This document shows, piece by piece, positions 14,101 through 17,100 of a stretch of 64,000 bases of DNA. The translations under genes and the position numbers were made by a program. Positions within the stretch are counted from its first letter, which is position 1. The number at the start of each line of letters is the position of its first letter. Origin of the DNA: Vicugna vicugna (lineage: Eukaryota); the NCBI GenBank assembly GCA_013265495.1, contig MU061814.1:5769684-5833683 (forward strand), in the 5' to 3' direction. Under the pieces are notes generated by a model. The model was not told where the DNA came from and searched no databases. It was given only the letters and a program-made list of their open reading frames with translations.

Positions 14101-17100
14101 CCTCTAGGGGAACACAGTACTGGATGCTCCGAGACCGGCACCGTATGCCGCCCTCTGCTGCTTCGTTGGGGCTGGACATGTGCTGGACGCTCAGGGACCT
14201 GGCCTTGATGAGCCCTGGGGCCTGGGTGCTGGTGGGTGGGCGGCAGGGCCGAGGCGAAGGGCAGGGGCTAGCTGTCCCAGCCTCTGAAGGCTGCAGAGTG
14301 GGGACCTGGTCCGAGGGCGACTGGCAGGCCGGCTGGGGCTTGACTGGCTGGTCTGGGCCACAAGACGGGGAGGGGGAGGGGCCCCTGCTTTCGAGGTGGG
14401 CCTGCCCTTGGGGCTCCGGCCAGAAGCGTGGGGCACTGGCCGCCTTGTGCATGGACTCAATGAGCCGCCGGCAGTTGTCCTTGACCACGGATGGCCGCTT
14501 CATGAGGAGCAGGCGCGGCACGACGTCCAGGAAAATGCGGCGGACCCAGGCGGGCATGGTGTGCGTGCGCGGGGAGCGGTGGTGCACGTTGAGCACGAAG
14601 ACCGTGATGACGATGGAGAGTGTGACGAAGATCATGGTGAAGAGCAGGTACTCGCCGATGAGCGGGATGACCAGCGAGGTGGACGGGATGATCTCGGTGA
14701 TGAGCAGCAGGAAGACGGTGAGCGAGAGCAGCACGGAGATGCAGAGCGTGATCTTCTCACCGCACTCGGACGGCAGGTAGAAGACGAGCACGGTGAGGCA
14801 GGAGATGAGCAGGCAGGGGATAATGAGGTTGACCGTGTAGAAGAGCGGCAGGCGGCGGATGACGAAGTAGTAGGTCACGTCCGCGTAGACCTCCGCACAG
14901 CAGTCATACTTCTTGGTGTTGTAGGTGCCGGCGGCGTTGACGATGGCCCACTCGCCGCTCTCCCAGTAGTCCTTCAGGTCCACCATNNNNNNNNNNNNNN
15001 NNNNNNNNNNNNNNNNNNNNNNNNNNNNNNNNNNNNNNNNNNNNNNNNNNNNNNNNNNNNNNNNNNNNNNNNNNNNNNNNNNNNNNNNNNNNNNNNNNNN
15101 NNNNNNNNNNNNNNNNNNNNNNNNTTGCACCCGCCCGTCGTGGAAGAGGTGGGCCTTGGTCAGGTGGGTGACAGCAAAGTCCCCGTCCGCGCTGGGTAGG
15201 AGAGAGAGCGTGGTGAGACATCCCCGCCTGCCGCAAGTGCACCCCCACCTCCCGGTGGCTCTGCCGGGGGTGGGGTGGGGCTGGGCTGGGCCTGCGGCCC
15301 ACCTCGGCTGTCACCCCTGCGCCGGGGCCGACATACGGCGGGGACTGTCTCCGCCATCCACACCATACTCGACACCCACGCTTGCTGCTGGTGATGACAG
15401 TGGTCATCTGGGCTGAAGCAGCCATGTCGAGAGCTCCAGACGCACAAGTGGCCCCCGGGCAGCACTCAGAATGCCTCATCCCCTGCGGTCACTCGGGGCT
15501 GGGCCAAAGTTGGAGTGAGACCTATCTGGCCACCTTCTCCTGCTTCAGACCGTGCGTGCCAGTGACGCTGAGCACTCAGCGCCTTCCCCCACTGACCCTT
15601 CCCTGAACCTGAGGCAGGAAGGACCCCCCTTCCTGCACAGGTGAGAACTCTGGGGCCCGACAAGGCAAAGACCAGGCCAGGACTCCTGAGTGGGACATGG
15701 ACACCACCCATCACATTCCAGGCCGTCAGCCCTCCTGCCTCCCCCTCAGCCCGGGGGCCTTGTCCACAGGCCGGGGTGGGCGGCAGGGTGAGGGGTGCTG
15801 TCCCCGGCCCTCCTGCTGCGGGCAGAACACCCAGCCCGCAGCCCTGGTGCTGGGCCTCCCTGACAGTGCCATCCACCTCAGTTTTCTTCACCAAAGATGT
15901 CCACAGAGGGGAGGGCCACAGCACAATGAGAGGGGAGGCAGCCAGCCTGTGGGGACACAGGGACACCCACACACAGCTCCCCAAGAGTCCCGTTTGCTCC
16001 AGAAGGGGGCCACTCTCTCCTTTGCACTGGATGCGCCTGGCCCCCAGTCTGGGTCCTGAGTGGGTGTAACCTGGACCTTGGGGGGCGGGGAGGGGCACTC
16101 TGTCAGCCTCAGTTTCCCCATAAAGACTGAGCTGTCCACTCCGGGTGTGGTGCCCACAGACACACGGAGGCGACAGCCATCCCCCTGCCAGCTTCGGCTC
16201 TGAAACGTGGCCTGGAGACCTCCTCTCGTCCCCCCAGGACATCCCCGCAGACAGCTGGTCCCAGGACTGAGGCACTGGACGCTGGTCATCACGCTTCTTT
16301 GTCTCCACGACATGTGCTGAGGGTGCATCTGGCCCCAGGAGGTCCTCAGAAGGGCCCGGAGCTGGCCTTTCGCTCTGTACTAGGGAGCCAGCCGCCTGGC
16401 AGAGCCCCAGGAAGGAGCAGCTCTCCCCGAGGGATGTTGTCACCACCGCATCAGTCCTCGTTCCTCTTCCCGCAGCTGCTTCTACCATGCCAGCGGAGAC
16501 AAAGCACCTCTCCACACTGCCTGGTCCCACATCCCACTCCCAGCAGGGCTGTGCCCCCGGAAAGCCCAGGGGGCGTGGACGTCAGGATGGAACGGCCCGA
16601 CTGTGAGCCTGTTCCGGACCTACCACAGGAGCTGTGGCCAGCACGGGCGGGAAAGGAGGACCCGGTCCTGGGCAGCCCAGGTTCCTGCTCCAGAGATGCC
16701 CATCCACATAAGATCCCCAGCCCGAGGGGCCAACGTAGGGGAGCCCCCCAGTGGACAGCACGGCCTCTGGCCTGACTTAGCCCAGGATGCTAGGTCCTGG
16801 GGCACGGGGAGCTGGGGGAGCTGAGTGTGAACCCCAGGGGGACGGGGCAGGGGGAACTGGAGGACTCCAGGGTTCAGGGTCGGCCCAGGCGGCCTGCAGA
16901 GGGAGCACAGAGAGCCTGCCCCACCTTCCACTCACCGAGCTGGGCCCCCTTCGCGCCTTCGTGCTGCCCCACAAACCGTCCCCCTCGCACGCGGCTGCTC
17001 TTCCTGCTGCCATGGCTGGAATCAATTAAGTTGGGAAGGAGCCCAATCGTTCTTAATCAAACAGCAGCGTTTTGTAGGTCAGGTCTGACCCTGGGGGCCT

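Follow-up and report, generated by a model that had tools for sequence, protein, structure and literature searches.

We analyzed a 64-kb stretch of the vicuña (Vicugna vicugna) genome, contig MU061814.1, positions 5,769,684 to 5,833,683 of the forward strand (hereafter the window), which contains CHRNA4, the gene for the alpha4 subunit of the nicotinic acetylcholine receptor. Among the receptors of the mammalian brain that bind nicotine with high affinity, alpha4beta2 is the main one, and the lid of its agonist site is formed by loop C. This loop is encoded in exon 5, together with the end of the ligand-binding domain, the transmembrane segments TM1-TM3 and the large cytoplasmic loop (Table 1). 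A first-pass annotation of the window had described the loop as one with private changes at positions of known pharmacology, among them the equivalents of Arg185 and Pro195 of rat alpha4. The comparisons presented here lead to a different picture: loop C and the stretch before it are of the alpha2 type in camelids, very probably as a result of ectopic gene conversion, in which the paralogous gene CHRNA2 would have overwritten a segment of CHRNA4 exon 5 on the camelid stem lineage.

Exon 5 is preceded by a splice acceptor ('cag') whose last base is 15192, and its donor, GTAAGT, begins at 13819. The frame is open across the whole exon, and loop C sits in an open stretch of 389 codons. A Pfam search with the visible part of the exon returned PF02932 (Neur_chan_memb) with 220 bits and PF02931 (Neur_chan_LBD) with 30 bits, the latter covering only the C-terminal end of the domain; both scores are above the cut-offs. 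A vicinal Cys-Cys pair in loop C is the hallmark of alpha subunits. This pair is present, and the two loop C Tyr codons lie on either side of it, at 14906-14908 and 14885-14887. Both Pfam domains and the Cys pair place the protein among the alpha subunits of nicotinic acetylcholine receptors, within the Cys-loop family. The top protein matches of exon 5 are all alpha4 subunits, the best being that of Camelus bactrianus (97%). The sequence after TM3 and in the cytoplasmic loop is alpha4-type, and the remaining exons of CHRNA4 also lie within the window, so that outside of the patch around loop C the gene is orthologous to CHRNA4. Taken as a whole it is best regarded as an alpha4 orthologue that bears one replaced segment.

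Table 1. Features of CHRNA4 in the window. Residues and codons are numbered from the Met whose codon starts at 14986.
Feature	Position	Strand	Remarks
CHRNA4 exon 5	13820..15191	minus	open frame; alpha4 orthologues are best matches; Pfam domains
Run of N	14987..15124		138 bases, 46 codons; inside exon 5
Putative alpha2-derived gene-conversion tract, visible part	14868..14986	minus	stretch before loop C, loop C, start of the strand toward TM1
Asn-Ala-Ala (AAC GCC GCC)	14930..14938	minus	Asn alpha2-type; third codon GCC, compared with ACN in alpha2 (Thr of the NAT sequon) and GTG in alpha4 (Val)
Lys (AAG)	14912..14914	minus	equivalent of rat alpha4 Arg185
Vicinal Cys-Cys of loop C	14897..14902	minus	direct reading of the codons
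Val (GTC)	14888..14890	minus	codon 33; not lineage-specific
Ala (GCG)	14882..14884	minus	codon 35; equivalent of rat alpha4 Pro195
TM1-TM3 coding DNA	14586..14867	minus	sites diagnostic for alpha2 or alpha4 nearly absent in every species; holds the 3' junction of the tract
Remaining CHRNA4 exons	about 21145-20933, 18380-18324, 18225-18115, 11149-11027		exon search within the 64-kb window

The alpha2-type segment of exon 5

The DNA of camelid alpha4 was compared with that of camelid alpha2, cattle alpha2, cattle alpha4 and blue whale alpha4. A site was called diagnostic when neither alpha2 sequence agrees with either of the two non-camelid alpha4 sequences. Between 14986 and 14868, camelid alpha4 has the alpha2 state at 17 of the 18 diagnostic sites; from 14585 downward, 46 of 50 such sites are alpha4-type. 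This clustering of alpha2-type sites departs strongly from random placement (hypergeometric P = 2.5e-12). The sole alpha4-type diagnostic base within the tract is 14932, which is the first base of the GCC codon of Ala19. Over its 119 bases the tract differs at 9 positions from alpha2 of this genome, at 8 from cattle alpha2, and at 25-26 from the alpha4 genes of cattle and whale. The agreement includes codons that differ at several bases, since ATG, AAG and TAC are found as in alpha2, in place of CGC, CGC and GCC in alpha4. The AAG codon of the loop C Lys differs at all three bases from the CGC of cattle and whale alpha4.

The same picture emerges at the protein level. Camelid alpha4 resembles human and rodent CHRNA4, the subunit of the solved structures 5KXI, 6CNJ and 8SSZ, in its best matches, in the sequence after TM3 and in the cytoplasmic loop, in exon layout, in the Cys pair and in both loop C Tyr residues. 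It departs from human alpha4 between the Met at 14986 and the TYYF motif, where about 12 of 40 residues follow alpha2; Lys stands for the Arg185 equivalent and Ala for the Pro195 equivalent. Loop C in turn matches CHRNA2 of this genome and of ruminants at almost every residue. The CHRNA2 copy of this genome, the putative donor, lies on a contig other than that of the window, and its loop C is identical to that of the window except for NAT/NAA, NS/NT, P/A and TIN/TVN (alpha2/window).

The alpha2-type run is bounded by alpha4-type sequence on both sides, judged on the 5' side at the protein level. Because the first part of the exon (15190-15125), which precedes the run of N, encodes a peptide like that of other alpha4 subunits, and the sequence below the run is alpha2-type, the 5' junction of the tract should lie inside the run.

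The loop is not confined to the vicuña. It is identical in the alpha4 protein models of Camelus bactrianus, C. dromedarius and C. ferus, and the DNA of the dromedary has the same codons, GCC, AAG, GTC and GCG, at the four sites flagged in the first-pass annotation. The changes are thus not private in the sense proposed there, and an origin within this one species was rejected. The placental alpha4-type loop C (DAV..TRKYECC..YPDITYA) was found in none of the four camelid sequences; all of them have the alpha2 type. For a wider comparison we used cluster representatives of 119 vertebrate alpha4 and 120 alpha2 sequences, the latter being the best 120 alpha2 matches; none of these 120 comes from a camelid, so that this genome's copy is the only camelid alpha2 in the analysis. 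All listed alpha4 representatives from non-camelid mammals have an alpha4-type loop C, apart from one gibbon model that is broken across loop C and cannot be read. The listed alpha2 representatives retain an alpha2-type loop C.

Gene conversion from CHRNA2, an unlinked paralogue, would explain most of the flagged features as a family-wide event. The converted segment would begin inside the run of N and extend at least to 14868, and the near-identical TM1-TM3 DNA of the two genes probably provided the homology. According to this scheme the conversion would have imported from alpha2 the Lys at the Arg185 equivalent, Asn17, Asp28, Val37, Tyr40 and the LKDY motif; Val33 would already have been present in both parents and would not have changed. 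After or with the conversion, codon 19 would have turned from Thr (or Val) to Ala, thereby removing the NAT glycosylation sequon that came from alpha2, and the Pro at the Pro195 equivalent would have turned to Ala (CCG to GCG). The chimeric loop C would then have been fixed before the split of the living camelids and have stayed unchanged since. On this evidence camelid alpha4 would represent a novel, naturally occurring form of a subunit that is otherwise well known. A literature search found no paper that links gene conversion with CHRNA2 and CHRNA4.

Distribution and conservation of the loop C residues

Direct reading of the minus strand confirmed the codons given in the first-pass annotation (K, V, A and NAA), and its equation of Lys and Ala with Arg185 and Pro195 of rat alpha4 also holds. 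The two residues are 10 residues apart and align with the Arg and the Pro of human alpha4, as known from solved structures, and of mouse alpha4; the same two sites are occupied by Ile and Gln in alpha3 of this genome. Spacing and alignment fit the account of R185, P195 and the exchange for alpha3 residues in the review PMC4052327.

Of the residues thought to be unusual, two turned out to be common. Lys at the Arg185 equivalent, seemingly derived from alpha2 in the present case, occurs in 41 of the 119 alpha4 representatives (Arg in 78) and in 118 of the 120 alpha2 representatives; within alpha4 it is the state of afrotherians, marsupials, sauropsids, amphibians and fishes. Val at codon 33 is the commoner state in alpha4 (Val 65, Ile 54) and is also present in alpha2 of this genome, the counts over the alpha2 representatives being Ile 113 and Val 7. 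A Pro after the loop C Tyr, on the other hand, is indeed the rule in both subunits, as the annotation had stated. This Pro is found in 108 of the alpha4 representatives, the others having Ser (8) or Ala (3, camels only), and in 115 of the alpha2 representatives, next to Ala in 4 (cattle, deer) and Ser in 1. The annotation had asked whether CHRNA2 of the same species shares Val and Ala. It shares the Val but not the Ala, since it keeps Pro (CCG) at this site. The absence of the alpha2 sequon was also noted correctly; it is not remarkable, however, because no alpha4 representative carries NAT, the third position being Thr in 0 of 119, and it is alpha2 that keeps the motif. Only Ala35 (GCG) and Ala19 (GCC) are specific to camelid alpha4, and by either of the two origins of Ala19 considered below, the NAT sequon would never have become established in alpha4.

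At codon 35, camelid alpha4 has GCG, a single base away from the CCG of whale alpha4 and camelid alpha2; cattle have TCG (Ser) in alpha4 and GCC (Ala) in alpha2. These differing codons indicate three independent losses of Pro in the alpha2 and alpha4 genes of artiodactyls, namely to Ala in camelid alpha4, to Ala in ruminant alpha2 and to Ser in bovid alpha4. Ruminant alpha2 contains a stretch of 13 loop C residues that is identical to that of camelid alpha4, Ala included; its Ala codon is GCC and not GCG, so that this Ala arose separately. The natural occurrence of Ala and Ser in ruminants shows that these residues are tolerated and that the Pro position is not inviolate. Ser at this site was also seen in alpha4 of hyena, aardvark and frog and in alpha2 of an anteater (tamandua).

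Within the camelids the loop is strongly conserved. Between the window and the dromedary, codons 1-145, which reach from loop C to just past TM3, contain 11 synonymous and 0 nonsynonymous codon differences. This ratio indicates that the chimeric loop is under purifying selection. Over the first 640 bases the two DNA sequences differ at 21 positions, nearly all of them third codon positions. In the comparison with alpha4 of C. bactrianus there are 11 scattered residue differences; all of them lie downstream of TM3, the majority within the cytoplasmic loop. Relative to alpha2, the changes in the tract on the camelid alpha4 lineage amount to about 2 replacements (positions 55 and 103) and about 4 synonymous changes (57, 90, 93 and 111). 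There is no excess of replacements in the camelid alpha4 tract.

Expected pharmacology of the chimeric loop

The camelid alpha4 protein is likely to be a working subunit with an alpha2-like principal binding face. Alpha2 itself partners beta2 in high-affinity receptors. As the imported face is that of a beta2 partner, the agonist pharmacology is expected to be near that of ordinary alpha4beta2 or alpha2beta2 receptors.

The conotoxin mutagenesis that the first-pass annotation had cited could be traced to Beissner et al. (2012, Mol Pharmacol 82:711), as summarised in the review PMC4052327. According to this summary, Arg185 and Pro195 of alpha4 hinder the binding of 4/7 alpha-conotoxins, and the alpha3 residues transfer sensitivity when they are swapped in. 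The review further reports that conotoxin potency is raised by R185I, R185A and R185E but not by R185K, the positive charge being decisive. Since R185K brought no gain in potency in the mutagenesis thus summarised, the natural change from Arg to Lys is predicted to be silent for conotoxin block. The engineered rat receptors and the camelid subunit concern the same two positions; as far as the review describes them, however, the former carried alpha3 residues, or Ala, Glu or Lys at 185, while the natural camelid state is Lys combined with Ala at 195. A literature search found no measurement for Ala at the Pro195 site.

A related case is known from alpha3, in which the difference between rat and human at residue 198 (Gln versus Pro) alters the potency of alpha-conotoxin RegIIA (PMC9783627). 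Residue 198 appears to be the homologous site, next to the loop C Tyr on its C-terminal side, where Pro is found in human alpha3 and Gln in alpha3 of this genome. As in the camelids, this is a natural species difference at an apparently homologous site, but it affects another subunit and other residues, and demonstrates no more than a potential role of the site in the action of peptide antagonists. The annotation had also cited work on agonist effects of a Pro/Gln difference between alpha2 and alpha3. Our literature search did not find such work and yielded only the related RegIIA case; a search for camel nicotinic receptors and selection gave nothing relevant.

The change from Pro to Ala is the sole remaining candidate for a changed pharmacology, albeit a speculative one. 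Ala at the Pro195 site may cause a modest difference in the access of peptide antagonists, and the effect of the two alanines is probably modest. The claim of a private pharmacology hence shrinks to one candidate residue, and its practical weight is modest. As a natural, family-wide chimera with an alpha2-type loop C and the change from Pro to Ala in an alpha4 subunit, the camelid protein could be used to dissect which loop C residues set the selectivity for agonists and peptide antagonists.

Alternative explanations, the TM1-TM3 flank and minor features

Several points weigh against gene conversion. The 5' junction of the tract is hidden by the run of N, and the 3' junction cannot be placed more closely than to 14586-14867, since all species that were compared show 93-100% likeness between their alpha2 and alpha4 DNA there. 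Just one of the tract's diagnostic sites (14939) is purely synonymous; the case for conversion therefore rests mainly on the exact codon matches at replacement sites. Ala19 may be either a point mutation (a later A-to-G) or a mosaic codon with G from alpha4 and C from alpha2. Finally, the tract is equally far from the alpha2 genes of its own genome and of cattle (9 versus 8 of 119 bases), which points to an old conversion on the camelid stem, with a date that is loose because it comes from 119 bases.

The changes in loop C, above all Pro to Ala, could instead have been selected for an altered sensitivity of alpha4beta2 to plant nicotinic alkaloids or toxins. This explanation gains from published evidence that the residue following the loop C Tyr helps to determine the action of peptide antagonists, both in alpha4 (P195, as summarised in PMC4052327) and in alpha3 (Gln198, PMC9783627). 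Furthermore, artiodactyls lost the Pro three times while 223 of the 239 alpha2 and alpha4 representatives keep it, and the new state is kept strictly throughout the camelids. However, about 2 replacements against about 4 synonymous changes in the tract are no replacement excess, and the Lys is predicted to be neutral from the mutagenesis as reviewed. Moreover, cone-snail toxins are irrelevant to camelids, and the animals that carry Ser at this site (hyena, aardvark and frog in alpha4, anteater in alpha2) have no common diet. We consider such a retuning unlikely. A broader version, in which the repeated loss of Pro in artiodactyls and the fixation of an alpha2-type loop C would both reflect adaptive retuning of high-affinity brain nicotine receptors in alkaloid-exposed browsing herbivores, seems slightly less likely again. 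The case also calls for caution in selection scans, in which a conversion tract, unless the paralogue is checked, would give the impression that ligand-binding residues had gone through a burst of positive selection.

A further possibility is that alpha4 moved toward alpha2 residue by residue, through convergent point substitutions and without recombination. At most of the diagnostic sites in the tract the difference changes the residue, and selection for an alpha2-like face could therefore in principle mimic a conversion. But 12 residues in 40 codons would each have had to reach the exact alpha2 codon, including the three-base swaps and the synonymous site 14939. The sequence also returns abruptly to the alpha4 type, and no other mammal among the listed representatives has an intermediate state. 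Together, these observations make convergence very improbable. An artefact might be suspected as well, be it sequencing errors or an assembly in which reads of CHRNA2 and CHRNA4 were wrongly joined or collapsed, for the paralogues are near-identical over about 280 bases adjoining the tract, where assemblers can switch. This is the least credible explanation, given that the tract departs from alpha2 of this genome at 9 of 119 bases, both Ala codons among them, and so is no copy of it, that the dromedary assembly has the same four codons together with 3 synonymous differences in the tract, that three Camelus gene models agree, and that 60-70% of the words sampled from 14868-14986 are present in runs from two studies of one organism, one of which may have been the source of the assembly.

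The TM1-TM3 flank deserves a separate comment. Its protein is identical to that of human alpha4. The likeness of CHRNA2 and CHRNA4 DNA in this region extends to synonymous sites, within as well as between species. A camelid-specific meaning of this identity was rejected, since alpha4 and alpha2 of cattle are 93-97% alike and alpha2 of this genome equals blue whale alpha4 across 120 bases. The likeness would reflect either an extreme constraint on synonymous sites or a recurrent homogenisation of the unlinked paralogues across mammals, and in the context of gene conversion it is a plausible substrate for ectopic pairing. Two synonymous states, G at 14771 and T at 14759, are common to both camelid paralogues and are found neither in cattle nor in whale. 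In addition, the Glu of PSECGEK in camelid alpha2 is alpha4-type, cattle alpha2 having Asp at this place. These observations hint that exchange in camelids also went through TM1-TM2, possibly in the direction from alpha4 to alpha2.

Three minor observations concern other parts of the gene and its models. In the dromedary assembly (GCA_000803125.3), CHRNA4 contains N and a frame shift about 645 bases past the Met that matches 14986, and the open frame ends early; this probably explains the odd gene model of 582 residues (86% identity). The first coding part of CHRNA4 in the window (20933-21145, minus strand) gave only a 77-79% match to camel and whale alpha4 in tblastn. Between exons 5 and 6, the segment 11410-11508 (minus strand) matches at 94% an extra piece of 33 residues in the isoform X2 model of Camelus bactrianus; this piece could be an alternative exon by prediction, or else an artefact of annotation.

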